This document shows, one piece after another, positions 7,525-49,232 of a stretch of 64,000 nucleotides of DNA (the stretch's first letter is position 1; each line of letters begins with the position of its first letter). The position numbers were made by a program, and so were the translations under genes. The DNA is from Mytilus californianus (taxonomy: Eukaryota). The stretch covers positions 80,476,001 to 80,540,000 of the forward strand of contig NW_026262690.1 in NCBI RefSeq assembly GCF_021869535.1, written 5' to 3'. Below the pieces are notes generated by a model. That model saw only the letters and a list, made by a program, of their open reading frames with translations, did no database searches and was not told the DNA's origin.

Positions 7525-7653
7525 CTGTAAATATAAAACACAAAATTTTATGTTATATCCTCAGTAAATGACAGCTGTGTCTGCATTGATTAGCGCGTAT
7601 AAAAAACTTAAATTTATATATTACAGTTCTCTGAAAACTTTGCTAACTTTTAC

Positions 7654-7700
7654 CTTTTATTTATTGGACGAACTCGCACCGCTACTTTAACATTCGACAT
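7654..7700 (-). CDS. STARD9: Kinesin-3 (STARD9/KIF16-like) coding exon 1
   Basis: ATG at 7700 gives MSNVKVAVRVRPINK(R), the classic kinesin motor N-terminus. 47 nt, GTAAAA donor. Confidence 0.92.
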
Positions 7701-8379
7701 CGTATCATTTTTTATCCATTGTCTATTTTTGTCCTCCAAATAAATAAATACATTATAAAGAACGATTCCAAACTGTTAGAAAAGTTTAATCTCACAGCTC
7801 CCACAATATTCCAAATCAACTTTGTTGATCACGGTCATTTAACTACTCGATCATAATCATTGAAGCGTTTGACTCAAAGGTAAAAAAACCTATAAACACC
7901 AAGGTGCGCTCGTTTGTAATATTAAATGCCATATCAAGAAAATATTGATATACAGACGTACACTTTTAAAGATTATATATATAAATTAATTAAAAAATTA
8001 ATTACAGAAACTTGAACATAGAAATGAAAGATAATAAGTCCTAACAATAATTATGTTTTATTTCAATTTTTTTTCTGACCTTGACCTCACTATACGGGTT
8101 CGAATAATTGAATGAACGTATAAGCCTTCATTTTTCTTATAATTATCGATCAATTTTAACGATTACTATCTGTTGGGTTTGAATGTGTCTTCTGTTTCTA
8201 TTTCAAAATCTGTCTCAGGTTTTATCTCTATCGATTTATAAATGAGTTTCGAACAGCGGTATACTACTGTTGCCTTTATTTTCATCTGGGAACAGTATAT
8301 CTAAGTCAAGTCCCGTCAATATATATGTTCCTGTTTTCATGGACCTTTGGTCATTGTTTTTGGTTGTCTTTTCTCCTTA

Positions 8380-17576: not shown

Positions 17577-17677
17577 TCAAGACTCCAATAGCACGTGCCA
17601 GCGACAAACTTGATCACCTTTGTTTTCCCTCATGTCTGTCCAATGAGAAAGCTCTTCTTCACCGCTACTGTTCAACC
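17577..17677 (-). CDS. SYT14: Synaptotagmin-14/16-like, last coding exon (9)
   Basis: ttcttcag acceptor. Translates (G)[32 protein letters not shown], closely matching the recalled SYT14 C-terminus [32 protein letters not shown]. Confidence 0.95.
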
Positions 17678-18247
17678 CTGAAGAAAAATTAAGATTTCAT
17701 AAAACTGTTAAATATTTGCCTTTAGACCTTAAGCAACCAACAATCAATCAATACTCCTGTTAAGAGCATAAGTTTTTAAATGATAATGGGTCAAACTTGT
17801 TCCCCCCACTTAATGAGTGATTACTGTGTTCACTGGGGTCCACTCTCTATTTAGGCTACAGTTAGCTGCATGTATTGACATTTTCAGTCATGCAGGTCAA
17901 GACCAGGATGAAAAATTGTCAAAATTTATGTTTTTTGCAGCAGATGACCAACTTTGGGGCAGCGTGTTGCTTACCTTAAGGTAAAGGTCAACGGTCATTC
18001 TTGAAGACAATAAAGGAACATGTGGATTGTATGTTTTCAATTTGCCTTCCTGTTATTTTTTTATGGAATGTTGTCACTTTGGCAATATTACTTAACTCCA
18101 TTATTTTTTTAGTTTAATATATATAGAATACAATACATCCAATGAGAAATAGTTTTCTTGTGGCCACTTGAAATTGTGATTTTAAGAATGCTGATTTTTT
18201 TTAAATACCCAAAATGTCAGTTATTTTGAAATTGATATACAACAAAC

Positions 18248-18460
18248 CTAATGAAAACCATCCAATCATCTCTTTTTTCTTCATACTTCTTTTGTTATAC
18301 ACAGAAACCATCAGGGTCACTTCAGCTAACTGAAACAATGCCACCTGGAACATGAACGTCTCCTTAAACAATGGATTTGGCTGTCCCCTTCTAACAGAGG
18401 TCTTACTTCTTGTGATTTCCTGACCAGTTGGGGACATTAAGGTTAGTTTGGCATAAGTAT
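18248..18460 (-). CDS. SYT14: Synaptotagmin-14/16-like exon 8 (C2B)
   Basis: 213 nt, phase 1-1. Translates (D)[70 protein letters not shown]. Confidence 0.95.
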
Positions 18461-19899
18461 CTGAAATTGGAAATCATGTATAATTTAATCTATTGCTCTT
18501 GCTGTGAATATGTGTACTAAAAAAATATGCTTCCTTGTACTGTATTCAACTACTATATAAATAATTTTATTCTGATTTTTTTATGTTTAATCTTAAGATG
18601 TGCCCTTTTGAATTCCATTATTGTTTATTGCTTTTGTCATGATAAAAATTGTCTCAGATCTAATTATATATAGATATAAACTTAAAGAAAGGCCTCATCA
18701 AAAACTCAATACCCCATGCAAGTATATCTTTACAAGAAGACTTGAACTTTTCTATATATATGTTCTCTAAAAAAGCATACAATGAAAAAAATAATCAAAA
18801 ATGAATGCAATATCTTTATTCAATTGAAAATTGAAAGCAGATGCTAAGGATACAATTTTTAGTGTAAGCATGTACATGAATTTTTTTCTTTCCAAAAGTT
18901 ATAGCACTACAAGTGCTTTAATTTTACATGCTTTTTAAATATATTCTGATTTTTACAACCAAAATGAATGCATTAATTTTCAACTCTATAATAAACAAAC
19001 AAAATAAACATTAAACAAAACTTAACAAGGAAGAGAAAATTCCTACTATCACCAAAAATCTTTAACTTAACCTCGTATTCTTATGATCGCTGGAATATCA
19101 ATATATAGATTACATTTATATAACTATGGCAACAATAATGAAGTCAATGCCATTCATATTTTATCAGTTGAAAAATAAAGCAATTTTTTGAAACTGGTTA
19201 AAAAAAACCGCTGCAAGCCTATAGAAAACATGATATCTAGCAGTTTCACTTAAAGGGAGATAATTCACATTTGATAATTAACCTAATACCTTTTTACATT
19301 GTTATTCAAAACAAACTTATCTGGAGGTCATTAAAGCTGCAATTTAAGCTTCTATTTGACCTAAGACATATTGTAGCATTACTTTTATGGTAAGAAATAT
19401 TATTAGTTTGGGAAGTTTCTGAAAAAAATGCTTCAAAGACCAATACCTACTTTCTTATGAAACTTCCCTATAAATTTACAGACTGTGAAATTTTAAAATG
19501 CTTTCACATGATACTGTATAATAAAAGTACCATCAAAAATGGGACAGCAAATACAGGTTGTACCTCAAAAACCTCTCAATTCTACAAACAATTGATAGGC
19601 GAAGTTATCCTTTACAGGCCTAGGGAGGGAGAAAGTGTACAGTTCAATTTGCAAGAACAGGAATTAGTTAGAGTCATTTGCAATTAATAACTTTATATAC
19701 CTATATAAAATTCATGAGCTGATAAAATTTAAGACACTTTTAACTTCTATACCATTTGGTCTCTGATGGAGAGTTGCCTCATTGACAATCGTACATATCT
19801 TCTTATTTTTATATTTTTCTATATTTGAAATCTTTGATTAGTTTTTCTATAATCATCTTTCAATATTAATACACTACATTAGCAATGAATTAAGTTTAC

Positions 19900-20089
19900 C
19901 TGGGGCTCTGTTCATGGCCATGTTTCTGAAATTACTTCCTTTTATGACTTCAACTGTCAATCGACCAGTTGTTCCATTATAACCAAGACCCAACAACAAT
20001 TCTGGCATACCGCCATGCTGCATGGACTGGGTAGAAGATGCACTGTCACTCCTTGAAAGGCTGGAAACATCAAATTGGGACTCTCCACC
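19900..20089 (-). CDS. SYT14: Synaptotagmin-14/16-like exon 7 (linker and start of C2B)
   Basis: 190 nt, GTAAAC donor. Translates GGESQFDVSSLSRSDSASSTQSMQHGGMPELLLGLGYNGTTGRLTVEVIKGSNFRNMAMNRAP. Confidence 0.95.
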
Positions 20090-20204
20090 CTAAAAATACA
20101 TAGATATTTTATATTTTATAGAGATATCCACAACTTATTTGGTCAAACCTTTTTTTAGTTTTCAATCAAAATATTAAACATCATGAACCAAAATGAAATA
20201 AATA

Positions 20205-21688
20205 TGGATAGTGTCCACAGATGATGACCCCGCTTGCATATCATATAGTTATAAAGGGACATAACTGAAGAACGGTAAAAGTGACGCTACTTAAATTTGA
20301 ACTTGATCTGAGTTTTGTGGTAATAAGCACTGTGTGTAAGTCTCTTAACATTTGGTTGAGGCTAACTTAAGTAGAGAACAGAAACTAAAAATTCAGCAAT
20401 TTTTCTATTTGTAAACACGCATAACTCTAGAACGGTTGTGTATAAGTTTTATAACATTTGGTTGAGACAAACTAAAGTTAGAGAACGGAAACGAAAAATT
20501 CAGCAATTTTTATGTTTATAAAGGGACATAACTCAAGAATGGTAAAAGTGTTCCCACCAAATTTCGTACTTAATCTGTATTATGTAGTAATAAGCATTGT
20601 GTATAAGTTTCATAACATTTGGTTGAGGCAAACTAAAGTTAGAAAACGGAAACAAAAAATTTGTACTTGATCTTAGTTTTGTGGTAATGAATATTGTGTA
20701 TAGGTTTCATAATGTTTGGTTGGGGCAAACTTAAGTTACAGAATGGAAACTAAAAATTTTGCAATCTTTCGATTTATAAAGGGGCATAACTCAATAATGG
20801 TTAAAGTGACACTACCCAAATTCAACTTGATCTGTGTTTTATCGGTGGAAGTCAAAATTAAACATTGCATTGTATAAAGCATTGATTATAGTTGATTCAA
20901 TTATAATCATGGAAAAAGAAAGATAAGGTATATGTACGATTTTAAAAATAACTTGATATTTAGAAGAAAATAAAAATTTAGCAATTTTTCCTTTTCAAAA
21001 GGGGCATAACTCTAGAACGGTTAAAGTGACGCCACCAAAATTCTAACTTGATCTGTGTTTTGTGATAATAAGCATTGTGTATAAGTTTCATAACATTTGG
21101 TTGAGGCAAACTAAAGTTATAGAATGGAAACGAAAAATTCAGCAATTCTTCAATTTGTAAAGGGGCATAACTCTAGAACCGTAAAAGCGACGCCACGAAA
21201 ATTCAAACTTGATCTGTGTTTTGTGGTAATAAGCATTGTGTACAAGTTTCATAACATTTAGTTGAGGCAAACTAAAGTAAGAGAACGGAAACGAAAAATT
21301 CAGCAATTTTCCATTTGTAAAGGGGCATAACTCTAGAACCGTAAAAGTGACGCCACCAAAATTCAAACTTAATCTGTGTTTTGTGGTAATAAGCATTGTG
21401 TACAAGTTTCATAACATTTGGTTGAGGCAAACTAAAGTTAGAGAACGGAAACGAAAAATTCAACAATTTTCCATTTGTAAAGGGGCATAACTCTAGAACG
21501 GTAAAAGTGACGCCACCAAAATTCAAACTTAATCTGTGTTTTGTGGTAATAAGTGTTGTGTATAAGTTTCATAACATTTGGTTGAGACAAACTAAAGTTA
21601 GAGAACGGAAACCAATTTTGGGACGTACGTACGTACAGACGTACAAGGGTAAAACTTAATGCTCCCTCCGCTACGGTGGGGGCATAAA
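20205..21688 (+). mobile_element. HINE-like element, family B, with a 160-bp tandem array
   Basis: Units beginning ggggcataactc lie at ~21001, 21161, 21321 and 21481, with degenerate units upstream. A (GTAC)n microsatellite is at ~21621-21644 and a terminal hairpin atgctccctccg-cta-cggtgggggcat precedes aaaaa. Confidence 0.75.
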
Positions 21689-22505
21689 AATTCTGTAATT
21701 TTGTGATGTTTTTATTTGGTGGAAAATGATGAGATTAGCATCGCATTATATCAAACATGTTTTTAACATTCTGATAGCATCTTTTTGTATGCAGCATTAC
21801 CTGACATATTATTAATCATTTTTTGTCTGTTGATCAACAATCACATTAATTGTTTTTATGGTAGATAATTATAAAAAGAATAGGCTGTATGAGTAAATAT
21901 TCAGATATAAATATATATATCACTTAAATGTATAAATATCAGAACCGAGTTTAGTTTTCCATGTTAGTGAATTAGGTCAAAGGTTCATTCAATTAAGGCC
22001 ATATCGAACTTAGGTTGAGTACTTGCATAGATGAAGTTAAATAAGCCACATCATAGTTTTATGATTTCTGGCTGTATACCTATAAATCTTAAGATAAAAA
22101 TTCTAATCTTTACTTTAATTCTGATGAAACAAACAAAATTTTAAATCATGTAGAGTAATCTTCTGTTTCATAATTTGAATTTTTTACATATCACTTTACT
22201 ATCAAAACCAACTATAAACTTGTCTGGATGATAAGATTCTGAAAAAAATATGTACAGTAACCAGTCTATCAAGATTTCTTGTCTTTCTTTGAAATTAACC
22301 TAGATTTCTGTATCTCCAGCTGTCAGAAAACAATATTTGCAATATTTCCTATCTGAAACTGTCAATAACATGAATCTGCGGCTTAAGTTTATTCTTTTGC
22401 AGCTAAAATATCACTATATTGAAGTTGAAAGTCCTAATATTAAAATGTATAGTACAAAGTTAGAAGCCCTGCCACAAACATTCTTATAAGCAATTTATAA
22501 CTTAC

Positions 22506-22663
22506 ACTCAGGTTACTCCTGGGTTCAAGAATGACAAAATGTGTTGAAGCACTATCAAGATTCAATGAGGCAAATCCTATTATACTTTCTCCTATCATTC
22601 TCTCTCTCCTCATCCTCTCTACACCATACAGACGGATACGTATTCCCATACTATGGACTTCCT
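22506..22663 (-). CDS. SYT14: Synaptotagmin-14/16-like exon 6 (end of C2A)
   Basis: 158 nt, GTAAGT donor. Translates (E)EVHSMGIRIRLYGVERMRRERMIGESIIGFASLNLDSASTHFVILEPRSNLS. Confidence 0.93.
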
Positions 22664-22789
22664 CTGAAATATAATATTAAGAAGTTGTATCAATAATGGT
22701 ACCACTTTAATAAACTTCTTCCAATCCCATGAGTCTGTGTATACAAGGATCTTCAAGATTTATTTGATGTCACTTTTTTTGTGAGAAAC

Positions 22790-23808
22790 CAGGGTTGGCA
22801 AAGTATTACCCGGGCGGGAAAACCCAGGTGGGAAACCCCAGGTTTTCCCGGGCTGGGCAATACTCCCAGAAATGGGTAATACTGGGCAATACGCTTTTTT
22901 GAGCTTATTTTTACACAAAATAGTAAAGAAACACTGTAGTTTCATAGCATTATTGCTAAAAATACACATTTTATACAGATAACCATGTCATTGAGAGTCA
23001 TTTTCAGAGAATAAACAAATTAAAATCTTCCTTTTCTTTAATAATTTTATGTAGGCAGAATACCTATAAGTTTTGCTAATTTTTTGATACCTTGTTTATT
23101 TCTCAGCTTTGATTGAAAATGCATTTTAGTGTTGTGTATTAGTACAATAAACTGGAATATATAATTGATTTCAATCATATTGCTAAATATACACCCTAAG
23201 GGGACAATTCACTCACACTTAAAGAGATGAAAAGACTTATTATTGCAGTATAAACAAATCTGTGTTATAATCTAAATAATTACTTATTAATAAGTGATGT
23301 CTATGTATAAAGTTATCATGCTAAAATTGTTTCAAAAATAAAAATAGGGATGAACAAACATTGTTAAATAATCATTTTCCATTTCCATTTTAGTTATAAT
23401 TATAGAAAATAATCAGAAAGAATACTTTGGCTACCATGTTAAGAGTTTGACCAATTAAGACAGAATGGCAACTTAATTTGTACATGTTTCAGCAGGGTTA
23501 TCTATAAATTTTTTTGAGAAAACTTTTCACATAAGTCTATTTGTGCTTCTATTTGTCTCAAGAGTTGCGGGACAGATACTTTTTTCAAATTAATACACTT
23601 TTAAAAAAAATTATGTATTTTAATTTTTTTTATTTTTATATGTCCTATAACTATATCTTTTGTATGTATTGCATTTGTAATTGAACACAGAGTCTTCTTT
23701 TAAAGTTTCAAACCAGTATTTCTTTATTACCCAGTAAAACCCGGGTTTTCCCAGTATTTCCCACTGGGCTGGGCAATACTCATATAAACCGGGTTTTTGC
23801 CAACCCTG
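22790..23808. mobile_element. Non-autonomous hAT-like DNA transposon
   Basis: TIRs CAGGGTTGGCAAA / TTTGCCAACCCTG. 8-bp flanks tgagaaac / tgagaaaa match at 7 of 8. Subterminal cccag/ctggg repeats; AT-rich filler with no transposase ORF. Confidence 0.85.
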
Positions 23809-24786
23809 TGAGAAAACACGTACAAGAACCACCTGACCAGATTTTTTCATGGACAATAAAGTATATGTCGTAAAATTTTACAGTTACTACATGAGAGGTG
23901 TTCCCCATTATATATTTAGAATTGGAATATTTTCAGGTTTCCAGATATTTTGTTAAGTACTGTTTGACCAATAGTAAATGTGATGCAAAATACTAGCATT
24001 TAAACTCAATAATGTAAACAGTAATAACTATTTTTTTGTTTTTTTGACGTAATAAAAATAAATTAATGACCATAAAATAGAAGTAGGCTAGTTTTTGGCA
24101 GATTTGACATTTACCTTTATGTCCCTTTAACATCAGGAACCTTTAGATTTCAAGAAAAAGAATAAAGATACCCTTTGTTTTGCTCTGCTTTTTATGCATT
24201 TATTAAATATATCTGCTATTAAATGCTAGTGCTTAATAATTTATTTATTTATTGTTTTTATGCTTTTTAGTTTATTATTTTATGATATTCAAGTGATTTG
24301 CTGATTCCCCCGTTCAGTGCACATAGAGGCGCTTGCCAAATGAGCTTTGACTCTGGAGGCTCATAAATCAAAAAATTAATTTGCTTTCATTAAATTTGCA
24401 TGCTTTTTCATTTTTATTTATTAGTATTTGCATGATGCTGCATGATTTTTTATGTGATAGTCGGTTAAAGAGCTCATTAGAGCTCATGTTTTTTTGTCTG
24501 TTATTATGTATATATATGCCGACTCTGAATAAAATTTACTTACTTACTTACTTACTTTACTTTGTCCAAGTTTTCAATACAATTTAAAAACATCATCTAA
24601 ATCTTTACATTTTTGTCAATGTCATAGATCAAAAATCACCGTTTAAGTAACCCAACAATACAAATCCGCAAGAAAGATATCTAGAGCTTATCATATGACA
24701 TTTAAAATTAACCAGCACCCAATTAGTTAAATAATTATAAATCTAATAATATTACTTGAAAGAATAGAACCATGTGATAACATTAC

Positions 24787-25066
24787 CTTGTGGTATTTTA
24801 CTAAAGACAAAACTCTCTTGGTATACAGGACTCTGGCCAGATTTGACTTTGGTTTTAAACTTCTGTTTCTTGGTAGGCAGTAATACAATCCTAACTTGAG
24901 CATGACTAGCACCTCCACGTTCAACACTAGGAATTTCCTGAGCTTGGTGTACAGTTATTGCCATTCTGCCACGTTTGGGGTCGTAAGAAAAGGTCATCTC
25001 TATGCTGCCACATTTTGATATTAGAGGTGGTTCCTTCTGAAGGTCACTGACATCAAATAAATGTTC
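24787..25066 (-). CDS. SYT14: Synaptotagmin-14/16-like exon 5 (C2A)
   Basis: 280 nt, ttctag acceptor, GTAATG donor. Translates EHLFDVSDLQKEPPLISKCGSIEMTFSYDPKRGRMAITVHQAQEIPSVERGGASHAQVRIVLLPTKKQKFKTKVKSGQSPVYQESFVFSKIPQ. Confidence 0.93.
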
Positions 25067-25078
25067 CTAGAATTGTCA

Positions 25079-25720
25079 AAGAATATGCTAAATTAAAAAC
25101 AGGTACTAGTATGTGATATACGTCAATAAGACAGCAACACGACAAAAAACATCAAAGACATCTAGAGATTTCCATAGACAACAAGTGTCTTCACAATATG
25201 TCAACTTTAAATCAAGAGACTCTGAATTTAGCATCAAAACCAAAATGGACAACTGGCAAATTAAACGGATACAAAACTATGCTGAATTTAAACAGATATG
25301 TGTTATACATCAATGAGACAGCAACCCAAAAACACAAAACATCAAAAGACATCTAGAGTGTTCATACAATATATCAAGCTTTAAATCACAGAGTCTAGCA
25401 TCAACAATCAAAATGTCCAACAACTGATAAAAGAATATGCTGAATTAAAATAGATACCGGGTATGTGTTATACATCAAAAGACATCTAGAGGTCTTCATC
25501 AATAGACAAGTGTTCATACAATATGTAAAGCTTTATATCAAAACCAAAATGGACAACTGATAAAAGAAAATGCTGTATTTCAATAGATATGTGTTCTACA
25601 TCAATGGCATGGATACAAAGAACCAAAAGAGATCTATTAATAGAAAAAGCTTCCATGCAATATGTGAAGCTCTTAATAGCCTGGAGTCTAGTATCAACAA
25701 CCAGAATGACTGGTAAAAGA
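25079..25720 (+). repeat. Degenerate tandem repeat, about 4 units of 130-200 bp, abutting the exon 5 acceptor
   Basis: Recurring motifs aagaatatgctgaatt, tatgtgttatacatcaa, gacatctagag and aaaccaaaatggacaactg. Confidence 0.75.
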
Positions 25721-26950
25721 AATAATTACTATAACAACAGAACTTTTATAGATTTTTTTTTGTCCTACAGGGAATTCAGAAGTGTTAATCTCTCTGAAAA
25801 ATACTAAATGATTAGTAACACATTAATTAAAACTTGCATCCCTTAATCTGGTGGCTTTATTTGTATACTGCATTTTACAAAATTACATTAAATGATCAAT
25901 TGACACACATTTTCATCTGTTGATCAACATAAGTAGAAATGAATGCATGCAATAATTTCTGAAGGTGTAGTTTTTGTTAACATAATGCTGGAGCATAGCA
26001 TAAATCCAAAGAAGACTTCTTGTATAATTTTGATACAATGTACACAACATAATATTAATTTCCTGCGATAAAAAAATAAAATTTTCTTTCGCCATCAACA
26101 AATTAATTAACTCACATAGCTCACTGCCATATGGATTTGATATTTTCCAACAGCAAGTTTATATTCCCATGATTAGTATTGCTTTTTTCCATGTTTTGTT
26201 CTAAATTCCATTATATTGCAAGACAGTTTCATATAAATGTTTATAAATCCTTCACTATTGTATTCTATCAGACTATTGTATTGACATTTAACTATTTGTT
26301 GCTTGACCTCATCTTACAGATCACTAATTAATTAATCAATAACAATTAGTGTAATTATTGTGACACAAACTCCAATTTCTGTTGCATTGGCATATGTATA
26401 CAGCCAGCTTTACAAATGTCACTTCTTAAAAATGCAACTAATTTGATATTTTTAGCAATGAAAGAAATTTTTCATAAGATGTGGTTAGATTGACAATAAC
26501 ACAACTGTCCACTGGAAGACCAAGGACAAGGATGTAAACACATACACATCACTGCTCAGCCAATAATGAAGTATGGTATTGGTAGCTAAAATGATTCTTA
26601 TAATATCATCTGTGTGTTTTTTTTTTTATTTGGAGGGAGGGGGGCAGGAGTTCACAAATAGAATTTTTCAAAGAAAATGAAAATCATCAACAGTTGTGCA
26701 TCATAGAAGGCTATTTATTAAAACTTGTAGATTTAAGGGAAGAAAACCTGTTGTAATATCATAGTATGTGGTCTATAAAAATAGTACATTTTGAATAGTA
26801 ATGCAGGATTAGACCATAAATTTTTACCAGAAAATCTGAGTAATGTCCCTTTTTACTGGTCGTCCTTCGATTAGCAGTTTATTACATCATAAGATTTGTT
26901 TACTTGTACTGTTTGGCAGTGAAGATGCTTTATAATTCATAGCAGGAAAA

Positions 26951-27363
26951 AAAGAATAAATTGCTTCGCTGAGCGCAGCTGGATACGGCTGCAGAGGTCC
27001 AACCCTGAACAGTTGGGGCAAAAATGGACGCAATATTCGCGCTTGATACAGGTCTGAATTTGGATTGTAATTAAATATCTGACACAGAATAACTGTAGTC
27101 AAAGAACTTAGAATTGGTTATATGATTCGAATTTATATTGTTGTTTTTATTTTATATTATTTATATGTTGCAAATTGTTGGTACCATAACCCCCAAAATC
27201 AATCCCAACCTTCCTTTTGTGGTATTGAACCTTATGGTAATATTTCATAGAGATCCATTCCCTTAAACTAAAGTTATTGTGCGAAAACCAATGTGTTTTC
27301 GGACGAAGACGCCGATGACGCCAACGTCATACGACCGCCAAAATTTTTTGCGCTCGTATAAAA
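26951..27363 (+). mobile_element. Family A HINE-like element, internally deleted short copy
   Basis: Same head as 165-330 and same tail as 2840-3062 (gacgccaacgtcatacgaccgcc..tttttgcgctcgtataaaaa). The 397-bp array is absent. Confidence 0.8.
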
Positions 27364-27882
27364 AGTAGATACAAAGTGATTTTGAGGATTCTTTTAAGGT
27401 TACACCAACACGCTTACAGTCAAGATTCATAAGAGGTTTGACTTCAATATGAAAATGTCTACCATAATGACATTTTATAAATAATTTGTTCTAAACATTG
27501 CTTCAATGAATACTAAATTGTTGCTTTGTGTTCTATCAAGAAACTTAATGCATATTGGTAATTTGAATATTTTTTCTAGTCATTACTCAATTAATGATGC
27601 TGAAGGGAAATTAAAATAATGGTAATGTAAAGCATAATCAAGGTTATCTTTTATTCATATCATGTTTTCAATGGTTTACACAGAATTTTCACTTAATTAA
27701 CAAGTACATTTTAAAGTTTGTTTTCAGAACTTATATCAATAGTTTTATAACCATCCAACCAATGTTGAATCCAAATTTATTATGAAATGTCCATATGATA
27801 CAAGTTTTCATATTGAAGTTAAACCTTTTTCATACTTGTGTGCTAAATAACAATGTGTTTTTTATTCACAATATGCATATTT

Positions 27883-28099
27883 CTGTAAATACAGAAATTA
27901 TTGCATGCATTTTTTATTGCGATTTTTGAAGATTGGACAAAAATGTAAGATTAATTTTTGCAATTTCAGGAAAATCTGCATACAGATATCATGGATATAT
28001 ATGTATCAGATATCACTATGTGAGTTCTTATTATTGCAATACTCACACAGTTGCATTATTAGCAATAATAAAACCTTGCAATAATTCATGAATTTACAG
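27883..28099. mobile_element. ~215-bp MITE (Tc1/mariner-like termini)
   Basis: TIRs ctgtaaatacagaaattattgc / gcaataattcatgaatttacag(ta). Confidence 0.65.
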
Positions 28100-28544
28100 T
28101 AATTACAAAGTCATATTAACTAAAGAGTCAATCATCAAAATTTGATGCAATGGAAATAGTTAATTACACTGAGCCTGCTTTACACCTATTCATACTACAA
28201 CTTGAGAATTCATCAAATATATCAGTGTTCTGGAAGTATAAACCTCTGCATGAGCACAGTAATACATGAATACATTTGTTCACTTGTTTATTCTCTTGAA
28301 TACCATCAATTGAAAGTTTCTGCCTAATTGTTGCTTTTCCCTTTTCAGGTTGTTTGAGGTGACTTATATTTGATTACAGAGTACAACTAGATTTGTAGAG
28401 AAATCCTTGTTTGAAAATTTATGACCTTGTAGGTTCAGTCTTTCACATAACAAATCAACAACTATTATGCTTTCAATTGTGTGTCAAATTCATTGAAAAC
28501 TGGATCCCTGTACATAGACTGTTTGTTTATTTCTTGCTTAATAT

Positions 28545-28749
28545 TGTAAATTCAGAAATTATTGCAAGGTTTTTATCAATGCGAATAATGCGACTGCGTT
28601 GGTATCGCAATAATAAGAACTCACATTTTGATATCTGATACATTATCTTTATGCAGATTTTTCTGAAATCGCAATAATTAATCTTGCATCTTTGTCAATT
28701 TTTCAAAAATCTCAAAATTAAATGCATGCAATAATTTCTGAATTCTCAG
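28545..28749. mobile_element. Second copy of the same MITE, in inverted orientation
   Basis: tgtaaattcagaaattattgc...gcaataatttctgaattctcagta. The internal sequence is the reverse complement of 27883-28099. Confidence 0.65.
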
Positions 28750-28827
28750 TACACACTGGAAATTATTTCATGCATATTCAGGACAACCTATAAATAAAAG
28801 TAGTTTCCCTGGAATAATAATACATAC

Positions 28828-29060
28828 ATCTTGGGACGTGGTTTCCTGTAATTCTGCTGTATATTCACTTCCAGATAATGATGGTGTTGGCTCTGTCTGG
28901 TATGCTTTATTGTCAAATATTAACTGCTGTTGTGAGCCTGAATCACATGGCATATCTCCTATGGCATTGCCAGTCGTGTCTTTTCTTTTTACAACAGTTT
29001 CTGTATCACTAGAGTCTACCAGTTGATCAGCTAATGAATCCTGGCTACTGGCAACAGGAT
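28828..29060 (-). CDS. SYT14: Synaptotagmin-14/16-like exon 4 (low-complexity linker)
   Basis: 233 nt, phase 1-0, GTATGT donor, open frame (D)PVASSQDSLADQLV...FDNKAYQTEPTPSLSGSEYTAELQETTSQD. Its phases fit both neighbours. Confidence 0.8.
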
Positions 29061-32060: not shown

Positions 32061-33883
32061 AACAAGAGTGCACACGCTGAAATGTCTCGCCTTCTTTACT
32101 AATCATTGATATTATGTTGATAGTCCTAAATATAAAGCTTTATTACAACTGTCACATAAACTTAACATTAACCAAGTAAACTAAACATTGACCAATGAAC
32201 CATGAAAATGAGGTCAAGGTCAGATGAACCATGCTAGGCAGGCATGTACAGCTAACAATTCTTCCATACAACAAATAGAGTTGACCTATTGCTTATAGTT
32301 TAAGAAAAACAGACCAAAACACAAAAACTTAACACTGAGCAATGAACCTTGAAAATGAGTTCAAGGTCAAATAAAACCTGCGTGACTGCCAAATAGATCA
32401 TAAAATATTTCCATACACCAAATATAGTTGAACTATTGCATATAGTATAAGAAAAACAGACCAAAACACAAAATTTTAACTATAACCACTGAACCATGAA
32501 AATGAGGTCAAGGTCAGATGACACCTGCCAGTTGGACATGTACACCTTACAGTCCTTCCATACACCAAATATACTAGACCTATTGCTTATAGTATCTGAG
32601 ATATGGACTTGACCACCAAAACTTAACCTTGTTCATTGATCCATGAAATGAGGTCGAGGTCAAGTGAAAACTGTCTGAAGGGCATGAGGACCTTGCAAGG
32701 TACGCACATACCAAATATAGTTGAACTATTGCACATAGTATTAGAAAAAAAGACCAAAACTCAAAAACTTAACTTTGACCACTGAACCATGAAAATAAGG
32801 TCAAGGTCAGATGACACCTGCCCGCTAGACATGTACACCTTACAATCATTCCATACACCAAATATAGTAGACCTATGGCATACAGTATAAGAAAAACAGA
32901 CCAAAACACAAAAACCTAACTATAACCACTGAACCATGAAAATGAGGTCAAGGTCAGATGACACCTGCCAGTTGGACATGTACACCTTACAGTCCTTCCA
33001 TACACCGAATATACTAGACCTATTGCTTATAGTATCTGAGATATGGACTTGACCACCAAAACTTAACCTTGTTCATTGATCCATGAAATGAGGTCGAGGT
33101 CAAGTGAAAACTGTCTGACGGGCATGAGGACCTTGCAAGGTACGCACATACCAAATATAGTTGAACTATTGCACATAGTATTAGAAAAAAAGACCAAAAC
33201 TCAAAAACTTAACTTTGACCACTGAACCATGAAAATGAGGTCAAGGTCAGATGACACCTGCCCGCTAGACATGTACACCTTACAATCATTCCATACACCA
33301 AATATAGTAGACCTATGGCATACAGTATAAGAAATACAGACCAAAACACAAAAACTTAACTATAACCACTGAACCATGAAAATGAGGCCAAGGTCAGATG
33401 ACACCTGCCAGTTGGACATGTACACCTTACAGTCCTTCCATACACCGAATATACTAGACCTATTGCTTATAGTATCTGAGATATGGACTTGACCACCAAA
33501 ACTTAACCTTGTTCACTGATCCATGAAATGAGGTCGAGGTCAAGTGAAAACTGTCTGACGGGCATGAGGACCTTGCAAGGTACGCACATACCAAATATAG
33601 TTATCTTATTACTTATAATAAGAGAGAATCTAACATTACAAAAAATCTTAACTTTTTTTTCAAGTAGTCACTGAACCATGAAAATGAGGTCAAGGACATT
33701 GGACATGTGACTGACGGAAACTTCGTAACATGAGGCATCCATATACAAAGTATGAAGCATCCAGACCTTCCACCTTCTAAAATATAAAGCTTTTAAGAAG
33801 TTAGCTAACGCCGCCGCCGCCGCCGCCGCCGGATCGCTATCCCTATGTCGAGCTTTCTGCGACAAAAGTCGCAGGCTCGACAA
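32061..33883 (+). mobile_element. HINE-like element, family C, with a 440-bp three-monomer higher-order array
   Basis: Starts aacaagagtgcacacgc. About 11 monomers of ~147 bp carry gaggtcaaggtc. Marker atatggactt occurs at 32601, 33041 and 33481. A (GCC)n microsatellite precedes the terminal hairpin tgtcgagc..ctgcgac-aaaa-gtcgcag..gctcgaca. Confidence 0.8.
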
Positions 33884-34174
33884 AAATGAAAAAGATTGGT
33901 AAGGGCAATAACTCCTTTAAGAAGTTGTCGGTGAAGTTGACATAAATGGACATTAGGTAAATCTCAACATTCTGAAAATGTCTGTCCTTGTCAGAGACCT
34001 CGACCAGCCCTTTGGACACACTGAGCTAAAAAACAATCACTCTATTTCAGGTATTCATTCAGTCAACAAAATGGCTGTGACACAATACCAATAAAAGCCA
34101 CATGTCTTTTAAAAATAGTACTGAACCATTTACATGATGGGAAACACATGGTAAGGGTTAATATTACTACCCAC

Positions 34175-34333
34175 CTTTACGACTAAGTCGCCTGCCTGCT
34201 TTACCACTTTTGCTACTTTTAATACTGTGCAGTGTGTCTGAACGTTTTATACTATGTGCCTTATGAAACTTGTTTTGCATCTCATCATCGCTATCACTAG
34301 ACGATTCTTCATCCTCATAGGCAAAAGCACTTC
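34175..34333 (-). CDS. SYT14: Synaptotagmin-14/16-like exon 3
   Basis: 159 nt, phase 1-1. Translates (G)SAFAYEDEESSSDSDDEMQNKFHKAHSIKRSDTLHSIKSSKSGKAGRRLSRK; compare the recalled SYT14 segment SSSESEDEALGKYHEA. Confidence 0.9.
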
Positions 34334-37300
34334 CTGTAATAAAGTTAATATATGTACTGACCACATCCAAAACATCCAAACTATCCTGTAATTGACAGTC
34401 TCACTGCTACCAATATTCTTAATGTTTAATATCTATCATCAATACATTATGATACAGTCTGTTTATATGTATAACTTCTGTATCAATTTTATCCAAAGCT
34501 ATTTAAACAGCTGCTTGGTATTTAAATAAATACGGGGTATTCACCATTGCAACTGGCTTGTTTTGGGTGACTTTACCTTAGATTTATCTAAGTTCAAACT
34601 AAGCAATTTAAACTTTGATACAATTAAAATAGAATTCAAAACTTGAACAAATGAGTGGATAACATAAGTATAGTTACAGTTGTAAGATTAATTCACATGA
34701 ATAAAAAGGAAACTTGGGTACAAAAAATGTACATGTCAATGAGGCTGCAACCTAAAAACACAAAACAGTAAACTTTCTTGTTAAGTTGTTCGCCTTTTTC
34801 AATTAGTGATTTCTACCTCTACCAGTAATCAAAGATCAAACTTCTGCAATTGTCTATATGGGGTAGCTAACTCACTTCAACTGAAAGGGATTGTCAGTTC
34901 AATCATTGGCAAGTTAAATGAAGGACTTTGAAGCTGGTATTTTCTACCTATCCTCCCAGCATTTCAGAATAAGGAGGAAGATTGGTTGACTCAAGAGTCA
35001 GAATAAGGTGTATAGGTAGGGTGGAATTTTCATGGAATATAAGTTCCTTTTTTATATTAGTTCCAAATGAAAGAAACATTCTTGAATATTATTTCCACTG
35101 AAAGAAATATAGTACAGTATTTGTTCCTGACAGAACAAAGGGTATGGAATATTTGTCCCAACAGGACTGAAACTTTGACACACATATTCTTCCTAGCATG
35201 AAGGTATAGTGCAAAATGTGGAAAATTCATAAGACATTTTTATGTTAATTCAAAGGTCAATGTTAGTTCATGTTTGTCATATTTGTTTTTTGTTATTTGT
35301 ATTGTATAAATAACTCCGTTGTTTTTCTCTTTAAATATATTTCACATTTTTCATGTCAGCGCCTTTCATAGAAGACTATACAGAATGAGTTTTTCATTGT
35401 TGAAGGCCGAATGGTTACCTATAATTGCTTTTATCCTCGTCTTTTGAACTCTGGTTGATAGTTGTCTCATAGGCAATCATACCATATCTTTACTTTCATA
35501 TTAATATTACTTCAAGATCAAATGTGGCCAAAAGGTCAACTGCATCTAAGTTAAAGTAAGGTTACATGCTTATCTATTCTTCTAACTATCCCCAACAGAT
35601 TGAATAATTAAATCAACTGAAAGCAATTTCAGGACAGACATTCCTTAGCAATCAAATAAATAACTGTTTGACTTTATTTGCTTATGCTTTTAATTAAAAC
35701 ATGTTTTATACAAAATTCTCATTTCTCTTGAAATCATCCATGTTCATAACAATATAACATACAGTACAACTTAGTTACCTGATTTTTATTTTATTTTTTA
35801 TCAATATTGAAGTCATTTTATAAAACATTAATCAGAGTTTACATGGGACTGCTTAAACTTAATTTTAATGGTCCCGATGGAAAAGGGTATTGATTTATGG
35901 TGTACAAGGCATAACAATCTTTTACCAACATTGTTTTAGCCGCAAACCTTTTAACCTTCAGATGGCTTGTGCAAATATTGTTTTTTGTAATTCTTTGGGT
36001 ATTAAATATAGTAAACAGTATTAATAAATCAATATTTTTTTCTTTTTCAGGTGAAAAAAAAGCAAAAGTAAAAACGTTTTTATTTCTAACACTCTCAAGT
36101 CCTTGTCAGCAAGTCTACTTTCTACTTAAAATATGTAAAAGAGAAATATTTAAAACATTACACTAAGAAACTAGTATTCATTTTTCTGTCATGGGTATCA
36201 GTTATTTTGTATTACATAAAGACCTTTCTTCTATCATGAGCATGTTTAGACTGTGAGCAACAGGAAGGTTTGAGGACAATCTGATTAAAATGCAGATCCT
36301 ATGTCCACCCTTTGCTTACAAGCATCCGTCTATTCTAGTAATGAAAACATCAGCCGATGAAACTTCTGCCTCCAACCTTTTTAAGGTATGTATCATTACA
36401 ACAAAAAAAAAGAACCCTGGAAAGTCTTTAAAACAGAAAGTAGAATGTAGCCCTTTCAGATCCTTGTAAGTAAAGGATGGACACAGGATCTGTAATTTTT
36501 TAAAGGTTGGTTTGAGGAATAAACAAAATAAATGTTTCCAAATAATGCAATATGCATCCTAAAGTTAAACTTATGTCAATGATATTGAGAATATGCTATT
36601 ATCAATTAATAATAAACAAAGCCATGTAATATTATATTTGCTTATTCTATAAACAGTTTCAACACTACCTTTAGTATGACCATTATTAGGTTTATCAAGA
36701 CTCTGACTTTCATATCATATTATTGAAGTTTAATTTTGAAACAATTTACTTGTCTCCATAATTTTCACAAACTTACTCTCAGCAGATTTATCTATGTAGA
36801 CCTATATGAATGAAGTCAAGCATCTTTTGCTTGAAAAACTAAATGACAGTCATGTACTGGTCAAAGTTGGGTGATTAACTAATAATTCAAATTTGAAAGA
36901 AAAACAACCCACCAAAATTAATCTTATTTTGTTTTTCAATTTAATAGTTTGTTTTTCAAATTTGAATTACCGGGGTATTACTAAATAATACATTTATATC
37001 CGGACTTTAGTTTATAAAATTACTGTCAGCTATGAAAGACCACATCACCATTATCCAGCAATGAACTATCATCATTTTGACAAATACATTAGCATTGTAA
37101 AATTTCCATTTTTTAAGAATCATAATCCAACTTTCAAAATTCTACACATAATTGTCTCTTCAAAGAAAATCATCTGACAGCAAGTGATTTATTCATAACT
37201 TCTTTATTTACATCTACAAAAACATAGTCTGCTTTTTAGTGCAAGAATTAAGGGTTAAAAAAATCACCTGATTTCTGAATATTCACACAATGCTTGGACA

Positions 37301-37621
37301 CAGTAACTTATAAACAAATTCAAAAAATATAAAATTTATTTGCATGTCCTAAGCAAGATAATTTACCACATGCAATCAATCTCTAAATACTATAAAAGAG
37401 ACTAAAATGTAGATTTCCTGGAACCTTCTTACAACACCTATTTTTCTCACAATTTAAATTCAAAAAGTGTACAAATGACCTATCTGTTTCTTTACCTAGA
37501 AGCAATGCATTGTCCGTTCCATTCCATTTATACATAATCTGTTATATAACATTCCTATATGGCTGGTCAGTAAATATAACGAATGAATAATTAATAAAAT
37601 CAATTGAAATGTAGCTCTTAC

Positions 37622-37784
37622 CATTCTTGTCCGTAGAATCTTCCTTTTTCACTTCCTCATACTTCAAATTTTTATTATTTTTAGGAGTTTTATGTTTGTC
37701 CACAGATTTTTTCCTGAATAGTCCACAACAAGAAAATAGTTGTGTCTTTTCACCAGTATCAAAGCTTAGTATCTTTCTAAACAT
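37622..37784 (-). CDS. Candidate alternative first coding exon of the synaptotagmin gene (no TM helix, Cys-Cys motif)
   Basis: ATG 37784 follows an in-frame stop upstream. Translates MFRKILSFDTGEKTQLFSCCGLFRKKSVDKHKTPKNNKNLKYEEVKKEDSTDKN, then a G|GTAAGA phase-1 donor compatible with exon 3. Confidence 0.55.
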
Positions 37785-39049
37785 CTCAATAATAGCTTTT
37801 TCATTATCATTGATTATTCTGCGTACTTTTAAGACAATAATCAGAATTTATGTGCACCGTGGGAATCATTATTCCAAAAAGGTATGATACATACCCTGTT
37901 TCTATCTGAATATCATAGCTAATAAACTGACAAAACTCGAAGGAAATCAACAATCCATAGTCTTTAACCTCGCTTATCCAAAAATATAAATAAAATTTAT
38001 TATTAAGATACATGAACTCATTAGGCTTTCGAGATGTGACACTATAATGTCTTTTTTCCTTTCACCTATAGTCATGCAAGATGCAGATAATTAGAACTGT
38101 AACAAAACATAAGAAACTTTCTAACAATATCAATTATTAATAGGATTCCGGGTTGTCAATATACATGTCAAAAACTATCATGTGTTGATTATTAAGGTGA
38201 TTCATAACTGTTTTACTCCAACGAGTTAGAATGAGTCTTGAATAAGTATCCTGTTTGTTCTATTGTAGTAACAGACATTAATTTCATCAACTGAAGATCA
38301 CAAATATTGTCATCCAATCAGAGACATACAATACAAAAGCTTTTGAAAAATAAGTCTCTCTGGAATCTGTGTTGCTTACCTGGCACATTACAATAAATTT
38401 ATTTACTAAACTTTTTATGATTGAATGGAGGACTGAGATTGGAGAAAGGACTTTAATGTTGTTTGATTAGCATCTAGTGGCAAATATTTCATGCATATTC
38501 TGATCATGACTGGGAGAAAAGGGGTGGTAAAGGAGTTTATTGTTTAACGGATGACTCTGGGATATGATTGACTGTTGTTTGTTTAACATCCGGAGAAAAA
38601 TATTGCATGCATATTCTGGTCAGACATCCTAGATAAATGAAAATTAAAATTTCCTGTATTGTAAATGATTCTCTTCTTATATATGTACCTCAGATTAAAT
38701 GAAAAGGATTGGTAAATGTGAAAAAAGAGTAACTCAATATAAGCCATACTCCTTGATCCAGTACGGTTTGTCATCAGAACAGCAGATACCCCGGTAAATG
38801 AAGTTCTAATATCATACTAAATATGAGAAAAAAATAACATCAAAGGAGATTGTACATGAAGGACAAGGACACGTTCTGGACCCATTGAATTAAAAAAAAA
38901 ACCTCATGGCATTATAGGTCTATCAAATAACCTCCCTATAATGTGTATGCATAAATATTTATTGTTGTGTCAATAGATATAAGAAGATGGGGTATGAGTT
39001 TCAATGAGACAACTCTCCATCCAAGTCACAATTTGTAAAAGTACCAAAA

Positions 39050-40285
39050 AAAACAATAACTCCTAAAGGGGTCAATTGACTATTTTGATCATGTTGACTT
39101 ATTTGTAGATCTTACTTAGCTGAACATGTATTGCCATTTATTGACTTTCTATCTATTTTAATATTAAAGAAAATAACCAAAAACAGTAAAATTTAATAAA
39201 AATAAACTATTTCCAACAGTAACACAACAATGGGTTGTCGAACTTGTCTGAAAATTTCATTACAGATAGATCATGACCCATTTATTACTTTAACTTCTTT
39301 CACTTTTCACTTTTGCTCTAACTGCTGTAGTTTTTGAGATATAAGCCAAAAACTGCTTTTGTCCCCTATGTTCTATTTTTAGCCATGGCGGCCATGTTTG
39401 TTGATGGATCAAAACCTCGGAAACAATTAACAAACTAGATTCCCAACAGAACATGCAGTTAAAGTTTGGAAGTATTTGGCCCAGTAGTTTCAGAGAAGAA
39501 GTTTTTTGAAAAAGTAATAGACTTGCACGAAAAAATGTAAAAAATAAACCTTTCAAAGGCAATAACTCCTTAAGGAGTCAATTGACTATTTTGATCATTT
39601 GACTTATTTGTAGATCCTCCTTAGCTGAACATTTTTGCCATTTACACTTTCTATCTATTATAATATTAAAGATAATAACCAAAAACAGCAAAATTTCATA
39701 AAAATAAACTATTTAGGACAGCAATCCTACAATGGGTGGTCCAATTGGTCTGAAAATTTCATAGCAGATAGATTTTGACTTATTCATCACTTTAACTCCA
39801 TGTCACTTTTGCTCTAACTGCTTTAGTTTTTGAGATAAATGATACAATTTATAAACAAGTTACCCTAAGGAACATTCAGTTAAAGTTTAGAAGTATTAGG
39901 CAAAGTAGTTTCAGAGGAGAAGATTTTTAAATGTTATCAAACATGATGAACAAATTGTGTAAAATTGTCTTTAAAGGGCAATAACTCCTTAAGGGGTCAA
40001 TTGACAATTTTGGTCATACATGTATCAACTTTTTTGTAGATCTTACTTTGCTGAAAATTTTTACCCCTATGTTCTTTTTTTAGCCATGACGGCCATGTTT
40101 GTTGATGGATCAAAACTTCATATAGTTTTATAAACTAGATACCCTAACAAACATTCATTTAAGTTTAAAGGTATTTGGCCCAGTAGTTTCAGAGAAGATT
40201 CTTGAAATAGTTTACGATGACAGACAACGACGACGACAAGTGATGGCATAAGCTCACATGGTCCTCAAAGGGCCAGGTGAGCTAA
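39050..40285 (+). mobile_element. HINE-like element, family D (decayed array, intact 3' end)
   Basis: aataactcct..ggggtcaattgac recurs at ~39055, 39560 and 39980. A GAC microsatellite at ~40220 precedes the hairpin agctcacatggtcc-tcaaa-gggccaggtgagct and aaaaa. Confidence 0.7.
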
Positions 40286-43432: not shown

Positions 43433-43597
43433 CTAGTTTGTCTTTACTTGATTGCTTTTTCTTTGGAGGTTGATCAATACATGGAAATCCTCCACAATTC
43501 TGGAAGCAGAACAGTTTGTTCAGGTACATAAAGAAGATGATCAAAACAATCAGAAATGATCCTACAGCACCAAGGAAAGCTACTGCTTCTGTTGGTA
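43433..43597 (-). CDS. SYT14: Synaptotagmin-14/16-like exon 2 (transmembrane helix)
   Basis: 165 nt, ttttcag acceptor, GTATGT donor. Translates (L)PTEAVAFLGAVGSFLIVLIIFFMYLNKLFCFQNCGGFPCIDQPPKKKQSSKDKL; compare recalled SYT14 PEAVGFLSAVGVF...YINKKFCFENVGGFP. Confidence 0.95.
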
Positions 43598-44329: not shown

Positions 44330-46426
44330 TTAAGATTTTGGAAATTAAATTTTTACATCACCAAACTTAATTATATTTCATACATTATAAAAACAACAGT
44401 CTTTTAAATTGGAAATATAAACAAAGTGATTGATATAAGTAAAAACAAATATTTCTTTTTCAAGATTAATCCTCTTCCATAAATATCAGAAATCTTGATA
44501 AAATGAAGTGAATTTGTAAAATCTCATCAAGACTTTTACACATAATTACTTAGACTGGAAATGCAAAATGGTGTCCTGAATAGATCAAAGAGGTAGGGCT
44601 AATTTTCCCTGAATTTATCTAAAATTAGGGTCATTTTATAAAATTACTTCAATCCTTACCAAAAGTCACAGTATCATAAATTCTTATGTGTAGTTTAATA
44701 TTTTCACCATATTTAGTTGTATTTCTGAACACGCCATTAAATCATAATTGTTATATAAACTCAAATATTCAATTCAAATTATTGGTTTAAACAACTTTCT
44801 GATTCTGCCTCAGTGAGAGACAAATACAGGTACAGGGAAAAATTGGCCCCACCTCTTTGTTATACACTGCATGATTAATTAAAGTCAGTTTTGTTTTAAA
44901 CATTTTAACTAGCATGCCAACGAATTGTTTTCTTTGGAAATAAAAAAATATTAGAAACAACACAAAATAAAACAAAAAAACACAGTCTCAAGTCTGGTAA
45001 AAACAAACATGTCGGGAAAAAATTTTTTTTTTTGTCAAACTTACCTGTTGATTTGTATAATTTTATTTGAAGTGTTTATGCTCTAGCAGACCATTTGCCA
45101 TATTCATTTTTACTTATAAAGAGAAACACAAAGTTTTTGTCTAATAATTATTTTCTATTTAGAAAATACTTTTATTTTACCTTCTTCCATGCACAAACTA
45201 CATGTACCTTCAGACATGAGGCCAGAGAAAATCAAGCATAGATATGTAAGTGTATGCTCATTCTACCTCAAAACTTTTGTTTTCTCTACCATGTCAATAG
45301 ATCACAAATTATTTTTCTTGTTCATTAAAAAAAAAATTGTTGAATGTAAAAAGTGCTTAACTGAAAAGTTTAGCCTCCATGTGACAGTCAAGTCAAGTCA
45401 AGTACAAATGAAGGAATAACAACTCTCAAAAAAAACTGTAGAAAAAACAGTTTACCTAATAAATGCAAAACAGCTGAAAAAAAAAATATTTCTGTTAAAA
45501 TTACTAATGTACAACATATTAATTTACATGTTTTAAAAAGGTTACTTATTAAAGCAGTTTTGTTGTGAGCAGCAAAACATTTTTTTTCATTGAATATCCC
45601 ACATTATACTACGTGTACATGTATATACAAAATAACAATGATTGTATTTTGTTTTTGAATTATTTTAAAACCATTTGTCCCATTTTTCTGAAGTTTTCAA
45701 CAAGAATATGGTATCTTTCGCAGAAATGTTGTGCCTTCGAACATTTGTATGAAGCAAAATATTGTCTGACATGTCTGATGGAAAAATATCCACAGGACAA
45801 AATTTCATGATTATCTACCATTATATTTTGTCCCCTTCCACAGAAGGACAATTTTCCATATGAATTTTGCCAGTTAAAAAGACTCTATAGGTAGACAATA
45901 TCTTATAGATAGATAGTAATGAAAATTGTCTCCTTAAAGCAAGTTTATTTTAAGTTATATTTTGTCTATATTGAGACAATATTCTATGGATTGATTGTCG
46001 TAAAATTTTCTCATTAAAGGGAGGTTATTGAAAGTAATATTTTGGACAATGATATCTTGAATTACCATCTGCTATTGTATGATGCTTAATCACTTGATAA
46101 TCTGATATACATGCAACTAATCAACATATTTTGTAGGAGTAATACTACTGGTGTAACAATTGGAGAAGGTCGCTAAATTTTCATGAGTACCTGAGATCAC
46201 CCCTGGGTTTTGGCAAGATTCCCATTGCTCAGTCCATAGTTTGCATTGCTATGTACATGTAGTGGTTTGTTTTTTCATAATTTTCATGGATAGCATTTCA
46301 TTATAAAATATTTCCCTGGACAGCATTTCACTGTATTTTAATATATATACATGTAATATAATATTGTCTGCAGACAATACTTTGTATGAAATTTAGTCCA
46401 GAGGACAATATTTCACAGGGTACATA

Positions 46427-49222: not shown

Positions 49223-49232
49223 ACGTCACCAT
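49223..49232 (-). CDS. SYT14: Synaptotagmin-14/16-like exon 1, coding part (ATG GTG ACG T)
   Basis: aaacATG context and a perfect GTAAGT phase-1 donor. Joining to exon 2 gives MVTLPTEAV. The total CDS is 1509 nt (502 aa) with all phases consistent. Confidence 0.75.

Follow-up and report, generated by a model that had tools for sequence, protein, structure and literature searches.

An alternative first exon in intron 2 of the synaptotagmin-14-like gene of Mytilus californianus appears to be a real, conserved exon that gives this Syt14/16 gene a second protein form without a transmembrane (TM) helix, a reading to which we assign a probability of about 85%. The exon was studied in a genomic stretch of 64,000 nucleotides (hereafter, the window), which holds no N characters. 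The reading rests on annotated isoforms with the same junction in other bivalves, on an N-terminal motif kept in the bivalves and gastropods compared, on protein-level constraint among Mytilus sequences, and on RNA contigs that leave the genome at the exon's donor.

Structure of the host gene

The gene was found through a search with its C2A exon, which led to the Haliotis synaptotagmin-14-like protein (P0003), and through a word search with P0003, which returned the mollusc orthologues that were mapped back to the window. The exons map with these orthologues at 70–100% identity and have GT-AG sites throughout, giving nine exons in the TM isoform (Table 1). The resulting 502-aa TM model is 100% identical to XP_052105924.1, and the closest relatives of the gene are all named synaptotagmin-14/16. 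Exons 4–9 (17577..29060, minus strand) encode the linker and the C2A and C2B domains, and Pfam PF00168 finds two C2 stretches in the orthologues P0266 and P0275 (E = 1e-32 to 1e-34). In the TM isoform the Kyte-Doolittle maximum over 19-residue windows is 2.77, at residues 9–27, and the helix is followed by CFQNCGGFPC. By orthology, the host gene is a Syt14/16 gene (Craxton group 4) with a tandem C2A-C2B, a TM helix and juxtamembrane Cys.

Two points of the exon structure concern the N-terminus. The residues of the optional microexon match P0270 and the N-termini of M. edulis isoforms X1–X3, which read MVT[S/P]VLHLLVPTEAV. The TM exon and the alternative exon both end in phase 1, so that either one supplies the G of the Gly codon completed by exon 3.

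Table 1 Features of the synaptotagmin-14-like gene in the window. Positions are those of the window; a slash marks an exon boundary.
Feature	Position	Strand	Details
Exon 1 of the TM isoform, coding end	49223..49232	-	ATGGTGACGT/gtaagt; MVT + 1 base
Optional 18-nt microexon between exons 1 and 2	45456..45473	-	cag/CTGTTTTGCATTTATTAG/gtaaac; SVLHLL
Exon 2, TM helix VAFLGAVGSFLIVLIIFFM and juxtamembrane Cys	43433..43597	-	donor CTAG/gtatgt, phase 1; replaced by the alternative exon
5′ leader of the alternative exon, to the reach of the RNA-seq contig	37785..38027	-	run X2 record 10; 8 upstream ATGs
Alternative first exon, coding part	37622..37784	-	orthologous to the N-terminus of XP_063427941.1; dN/dS 0.05–0.08
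Donor of the alternative exon, GTAAGA (AATG/GTAAGA), phase 1	37616..37621	-	same in all Mytilus sequences compared; RNA contig leaves the genome here
Stretch between donors, ending at a second phase-1 donor, CTAG/GTAAAG (37496/37495)	37496..37621	-	126 nt past the first donor
Exon 3, common to all isoforms	34175..34333	-	acceptor ttattacag/GAAGTG; phase-1 entry (G+GA = Gly)
Exon 4, shared	29060-28828	-	orthologue mapping
Exon 5, shared	25066-24787	-	orthologue mapping
Exon 6, shared	22663-22506	-	orthologue mapping
Exon 7, shared	20089-19900	-	orthologue mapping
Exon 8, shared	18460-18248	-	orthologue mapping
Exon 9, shared	17677-17577, stop included	-	orthologue mapping

The surroundings of the gene have features of their own. 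Exon 1 (49232, minus) lies ~370 bp from the first exon of an OPA3-like gene on the opposite strand (49604, plus; MLHADEVMLPILKLATLLIKQF...), a divergent neighbour also present in M. trossulus (L005:1-609, PF07047), and the start of a kinesin-like gene (MSNVKVAVRVRPINKR; 7653-7775, minus) is found downstream of the synaptotagmin gene. Intron 2 contains a repeat at 38972-40000 whose depth is very high in all runs (summed contig depth to about 3e5) and which has numerous internal joints; it resembles an abundant transposable element whose transcription mostly shows the first mate on the plus strand. Two repeat-like islands (35244-35641 and 36239-36636), covered on both strands in all runs, lie between the alternative exon and exon 3, and a tandem array with a period of ~440 bp occupies 32300-33900 of intron 3, with ORF pieces recurring at 32303, 32764, 33204 and on.

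The alternative first exon

The minus-strand frame that opens with the ATG at 37784 runs for 54 codons plus one base (MFRKILSFDTGEKTQLFSCCGLFRKKSVDKHKTPKNNKNLKYEEVKKEDSTDKN), its last base at 37622 being followed directly by GTAAGA; Cys19 and Cys20 sit within QLFSCCGLFRKK, and an in-frame TAA stop lies upstream at 37850-37848. A scan of both strands of the window found only two ATG frames of 50 codons or more that lead into a GTRAG donor; of these, 37784-37622 alone does so in phase 1. Joined to exons 3–9, the exon yields an uninterrupted protein of 498 aa.

This spliced model reproduces what the initial annotation had proposed from the letters of the sequence, namely a 54-codon frame, a phase-1 donor, an in-frame join to exon 3 and a 498-aa product. 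The absence of a hydrophobic helix, also claimed there, is borne out by a Kyte-Doolittle maximum of 1.68 in 19-residue windows, as against the 2.77 of the TM isoform helix, and none of these windows outside the C2B core of the 498-aa isoform has TM-like hydropathy. A further claim, that the alternative exon echoes the TM exon, found no support, as the two peptides gave no BLASTP alignment at E ≤ 100. Duplication of the TM exon as the source of the alternative exon was rejected on the same result.

One of the upstream ATGs in the leader opens a 14-codon uORF that overlaps the start codon and is kept in contigs of the M. edulis complex. With eight upstream ATGs and this overlapping uORF, translation from the ATG at 37784 should be damped, and the leader may thus damp or regulate translation of the TM-less isoform. 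Just upstream of the assembled 5′ end, a 72-nt segment (window 38020-38091) is tandemly duplicated in contigs that apparently belong to the M. edulis complex (L001:1059-1128, L002:864-933 and L004:127-196).

The second phase-1 donor (Table 1) closes a mini-ORF of its own, MYKWNGTDNALLLG (37535-37496, minus), and joining this frame to the common exons gives a protein of 457 aa. This form, which has neither the TM helix nor the Cys pair, matches 'synaptotagmin-16-like isoform X4' of M. galloprovincialis (P0283), in which MYKWNRKDNSLLLG is joined to SAFAY.

Counterparts in other molluscs

The alternative exon has a direct counterpart in M. trossulus, where synaptotagmin-14-like isoform X2 (XP_063427941.1, P0275, 505 aa) has the N-terminus MFRKIVSFDTGERTSQLFSCCGLFKKK...DKNG followed by SAFAYEDEE. 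Its start, as given in full, is MFRKIVSFDTGERTSQLFSCCGLFKKKVDKHKTPKNNKNLKYEEVKKEDSTDKNG, and the junction DKNG/SAFAYEDEE is the predicted join between the alternative exon and exon 3. The 498-aa model is 91% identical to this protein over its full length, and the TM isoforms X1 and X3 of M. trossulus come from the same gene as the TM-less X2. The order of exons also agrees: the TM exon, the alternative exon and exon 3 follow one another at 4424-4597, 9640-9810 and 12664 in M. trossulus (L005) and at 14417-14581, 22082-22354 and 25188 in Crassostrea virginica (L006). In C. virginica, isoforms X1–X5 begin MFHKKLEGLDV...LFCCC and X6–X8 have a TM helix, while in M. gigas a single cluster holds both 'synaptotagmin-16 isoform X1' (CCC) and 'synaptotagmin-14 isoform X4' (TM). 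These RefSeq isoforms of M. trossulus, C. virginica and M. gigas agree with the earlier proposal that one mollusc gene makes both TM and TM-less forms.

With the RefSeq isoforms of these three species, the M. californianus exon shares its intron position, its phase-1 junction and a start of the form MF.K..L...D...CC; it differs from the oyster exon in length and in its Cys cluster, the oyster exon being longer (about 91 aa) with CCC, whereas that of M. californianus has 54 codons with CC. The M. californianus product that was retrieved is the TM form only (XP_052105924.1), without an isoform label. Since the isoform is annotated in sister mussels and in oysters, what we describe fills a gap in the annotation of M. 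californianus and is not something new in kind. The gene model of this species gains an isoform, an incremental gain given that orthologous isoforms are already in RefSeq.

The same start recurs more widely. A beginning of the form M-F-x-(K)-K-L-x3-D ... [LI]-[FL]-x-C-C-[G/C/W], with basic residues after it, is shared by the TM-less isoforms of oysters, pearl oyster, scallop, Solemya, Mactra, Patella and several heterobranch snails. Among 18 N-termini from bivalves and gastropods, M1, K4, C19 and C20 never vary and F2 and D9 hardly do, and when the motif was used as a regular expression, the alternative exon was the sole match in the window and likewise in L005 and L006. The motif and its invariant residues indicate that the exon is common to bivalves and gastropods and that it is translated. 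Syt14 and Syt16 are among the least understood synaptotagmins, and a conserved Cys-pair N-terminus is hereby documented for the bivalves and gastropods compared.

A putative lipid anchor

The 498-aa product would keep the acidic, Ser-rich linker and the C2A-C2B tandem of the 502-aa TM isoform and would place before them a helix-free N-terminus of 54 residues, in which hydrophobic residues (LF..GLF) and basic ones (RKK) surround the invariant Cys-Cys. Within the TM-less N-terminus, this pair is the best conserved feature. We infer, by analogy, that it is S-palmitoylated and holds the isoform on the cytosolic face of a membrane, so that a reversible lipid anchor would replace the integral attachment of the TM isoform; the reading of the pair as a lipid anchor has a precedent in Syt17, to which we return below. 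Dual palmitoylation sites usually have hydrophobic residues before the Cys pair and basic residues after it, and GAP-43 and SCG10/stathmin-2, two proteins unrelated to synaptotagmins, have short dual-palmitoylated N-terminal anchors in which adjacent Cys are flanked in this way.

A TM-less isoform might nevertheless be made in which the Cys pair is no lipid anchor. Such a protein would be soluble, or its Cys would serve in dimerisation, metal binding or redox sensing, and any contact with membranes would come through the C2 domains or through pairing with the TM isoform. The M. galloprovincialis isoform X4 described above speaks for this possibility, being a plainly soluble form that is also annotated, and Syt14 and Syt16 proteins reportedly oligomerise without Ca2+. 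We consider it unlikely, although with a real share of the probability, since Cys-Cys is invariant in the 18 mollusc N-termini while nearly everything around it varies, since its hydrophobic and basic flanks are those usual at dual palmitoylation sites, and since Syt17 is a direct precedent for such an anchor. On the lipid-anchor reading, the exon lets one C2A-C2B protein be switched, in a natural and conserved way, between an integral form and one that is probably lipid-anchored, and would offer a clean handle on what membrane attachment contributes to Syt14/16 function.

Transcription and splicing of the alternative exon

RNA contigs place the alternative exon in transcripts. In run X2, a true RNA-seq library, one contig (record 10; 435 nt, depth 7.3) follows the genome over 38027..37621 and then carries 28 letters without a match there, while another (record 9; 1587 nt, depth 26.1) lies on exon 3 and stops exactly at 34334. 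Counting the last G of the exon (37622), one ambiguous G (37621, which could equally be 34333) and the 28 letters gives 30, or k-1 for k = 31, which is the overlap expected of two contigs that meet at a branch where AATG/GAAG and CTAG/GAAG converge. The donor of the alternative exon is used in RNA: colinearity of the contig ends exactly there. Its join to exon 3 in M. californianus (37622 to 34333) is suggested by the k-1 overlap arithmetic together with the sister-species model.

The other runs add coverage on both sides of this join. In run X1, a 257-nt contig lies at 37633-37884 and record 1 on exon 3; exon 3 is crossed in this run by a 2088-nt contig with 295 upstream letters absent from the examined stretch, which fits the TM form. 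Raw stranded reads of run X21 cover the alternative exon (0.28) and exon 3 (1.1–2.2) in the same orientation, the coverage of the alternative exon in a same-species RNA run being very low (0.28 versus 1–2 for exon 3). Run X6, which is DNA-like and colinear across the donor, was excluded from the expression evidence. For the oyster orthologue, spliced Logan transcripts are available (P0190–P0194). Contig depth, a poor measure, suggests that the TM-less isoform is a minor one, accounting for about 15–30% of transcripts.

Transcription of this isoform would start at the alternative exon itself (38027?-37622, minus), inside intron 2 and from a promoter of its own, because the X2 contig starts, at its position 1, at 38027 without foreign leading letters and because coverage further upstream is lacking (depth 0 at 38030-38228 in runs X2 and X1). 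Such transcripts would lack exon 1 and the TM exon; their translation would begin at the ATG at 37784, and 37622 would be spliced to 34333.

The exon could also be real but internal, a cassette reached from exon 1 or from the TM exon, in which case the choice of isoform would be made by splicing and not by promoter. An acceptor-like polypyrimidine-CAG site lies upstream at ~38097 (tgttttgttacag/) and would permit such a join, and the 300 nt upstream of the exon are moderately conserved, with 9–20% divergence versus 25% in the deep intron. The clean start of the X2 contig and the zero depth beyond it count against a cassette, as does the in-frame TAA at 37850-37848, at which any frame joined from upstream would stop before reaching the ATG. 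We regard a cassette as improbable.

Purifying selection on the exon

A word search with the 54-aa peptide returned only two 57-aa Logan ORFs, both from contigs of the M. edulis complex that are genomic and unspliced. Four Logan genomic contigs (L001–L004) and the M. trossulus sequence (L005) were aligned to the window; the four contigs are apparently of the M. edulis complex, their peptide being close to that of M. trossulus. Divergence from the window was 3.1–7.5% in the ORF, 9–20% in the leader, 10–11% in the 126 nt past the donor and 25–27% in the intron beyond 37495. The deep intron was taken as the reference, since the immediate flanks include the 126 nt of the longer alternative exon and so make the contrast look smaller than it is. 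Measured against this reference, the exon is 3–7 times less diverged (Fisher p = 2e-6 and 6e-8).

The substitutions have the pattern of a coding sequence. Nei-Gojobori dN/dS was 0.049, 0.079 and 0.068 in three pairs, with dS of 0.2–0.47, comparable to the intron divergence, and the replacements in the ORF are conservative (L/V, K/R and D/E). The ORF has two indels, each of 3 nt and thus in frame, against flank indels of 1, 2, 6 and 10 nt, and the donor is kept. Judged from these alignments of Mytilus sequences, purifying selection acts strongly on the protein sequence that the alternative exon encodes. A chance open frame without function in an AT-rich intron has next to no probability: the peptide is Lys-rich on an A-rich strand, which lengthens chance frames, and its stop-to-stop length of 101 codons falls in the tail found elsewhere in the window, but the idea is refuted by a RefSeq isoform with the identical junction, by the low dN/dS and divergence, by an oyster exon at the same position and a motif kept in the bivalves and gastropods compared, and by an RNA contig that breaks at the donor.

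Age of the N-terminal module

The exon may have counterparts outside molluscs. The synaptotagmin-14 gene of the brachiopod Lingula anatina has an unannotated ORF with a Cys cluster (MSVIKGICGTISSCSTCCFFPAFCMKPHKPR...GEEKTNG; L007:10714-10909, plus) in the same intron, after the TM exon and before exon 3. This ORF, which may be the brachiopod counterpart of the alternative exon, ends at a phase-1 donor, CTAATG/GTATTC, that shares AATG/GT with the donor of the mussel exon. Annotated TM-less forms with CC occur in a nemertean, a termite and a cuttlefish as well. Taken together with the Lingula ORF, these forms suggest that the module may predate molluscs.

We tentatively extend this to a broader proposal, for which we see somewhat less than an even chance: the MF.KKL...D...CC[G/C/W] exon would be a lipid-anchor module that is ancient in lophotrochozoans and perhaps protostome-wide, and vertebrates would have swapped in an unrelated N-terminus after the duplication that gave SYT14 and SYT16. 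If this is true, the single invertebrate Syt14/16 gene would have two membrane topologies, one integral and one reversibly acylated.

Comparison with known synaptotagmins

Syt16 has been described as the parental gene of the Syt14/Syt16 pair (Craxton 2010, BMC Genomics 11:37, PMC2823689). The Syt16 genes of Ciona, S. purpuratus and vertebrates have N-terminal variants without a TM domain, as does human SYT14; in vertebrates, Syt16 has the TM form as well (PMC2823689). For the Lottia Syt16 in the same collection no variants are given, N-terminal variants being mentioned in the text only for Ciona and S. purpuratus (PMC2823689). A literature search on mollusc synaptotagmin-14/16 isoforms gave nothing specific.

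The mussel gene resembles these Syt16 genes in that one gene of the Syt14/16 type uses alternative N-terminal exons to make proteins with and without the TM helix. The initial annotation had started from the contrast that vertebrate SYT14 has a TM helix and SYT16 lacks one, which is too simple, as Syt16 occurs in both forms and human SYT14 is also found without the TM domain (PMC2823689). Its suggestion that a single mollusc gene makes SYT14-like and SYT16-like proteins stands as far as the pair of TM and TM-less forms is concerned, but the likeness does not extend to the N-terminus of vertebrate SYT16. The N-terminus of vertebrate TM-less SYT16 (MVLAMASQDVQNFFQP...) has no Cys pair, unlike the mollusc motif, and inspection of Craxton's additional file 32 found no motif shared between the vertebrate TM-less module (MVLAMASQDVQNFFQPFSSW...) and the mollusc N-terminus. 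One gene with both forms is a published pattern, and a TM-less, Cys-anchored synaptotagmin, Syt17, is known too.

Syt17 offers a precedent for how the mussel isoform might work. With no TM domain, Syt-17 is attached to membranes by fatty-acylated cysteines at its N-terminus (PMC6684635, citing Fukuda & Mikoshiba 2001). Like Syt17 (the B/K protein), the TM-less mussel isoform has two C2 domains, no TM helix and an N-terminal Cys cluster, the acylation being known for Syt17 and putative here. The two differ in that Syt17 is encoded by a separate gene, has no TM isoform and carries a string of acylated Cys, versus the two Cys of the mussel isoform. The mussel gene, a Syt14/16 orthologue, is not an orthologue of Syt17; its TM-less product is an analogue that may work like Syt17.
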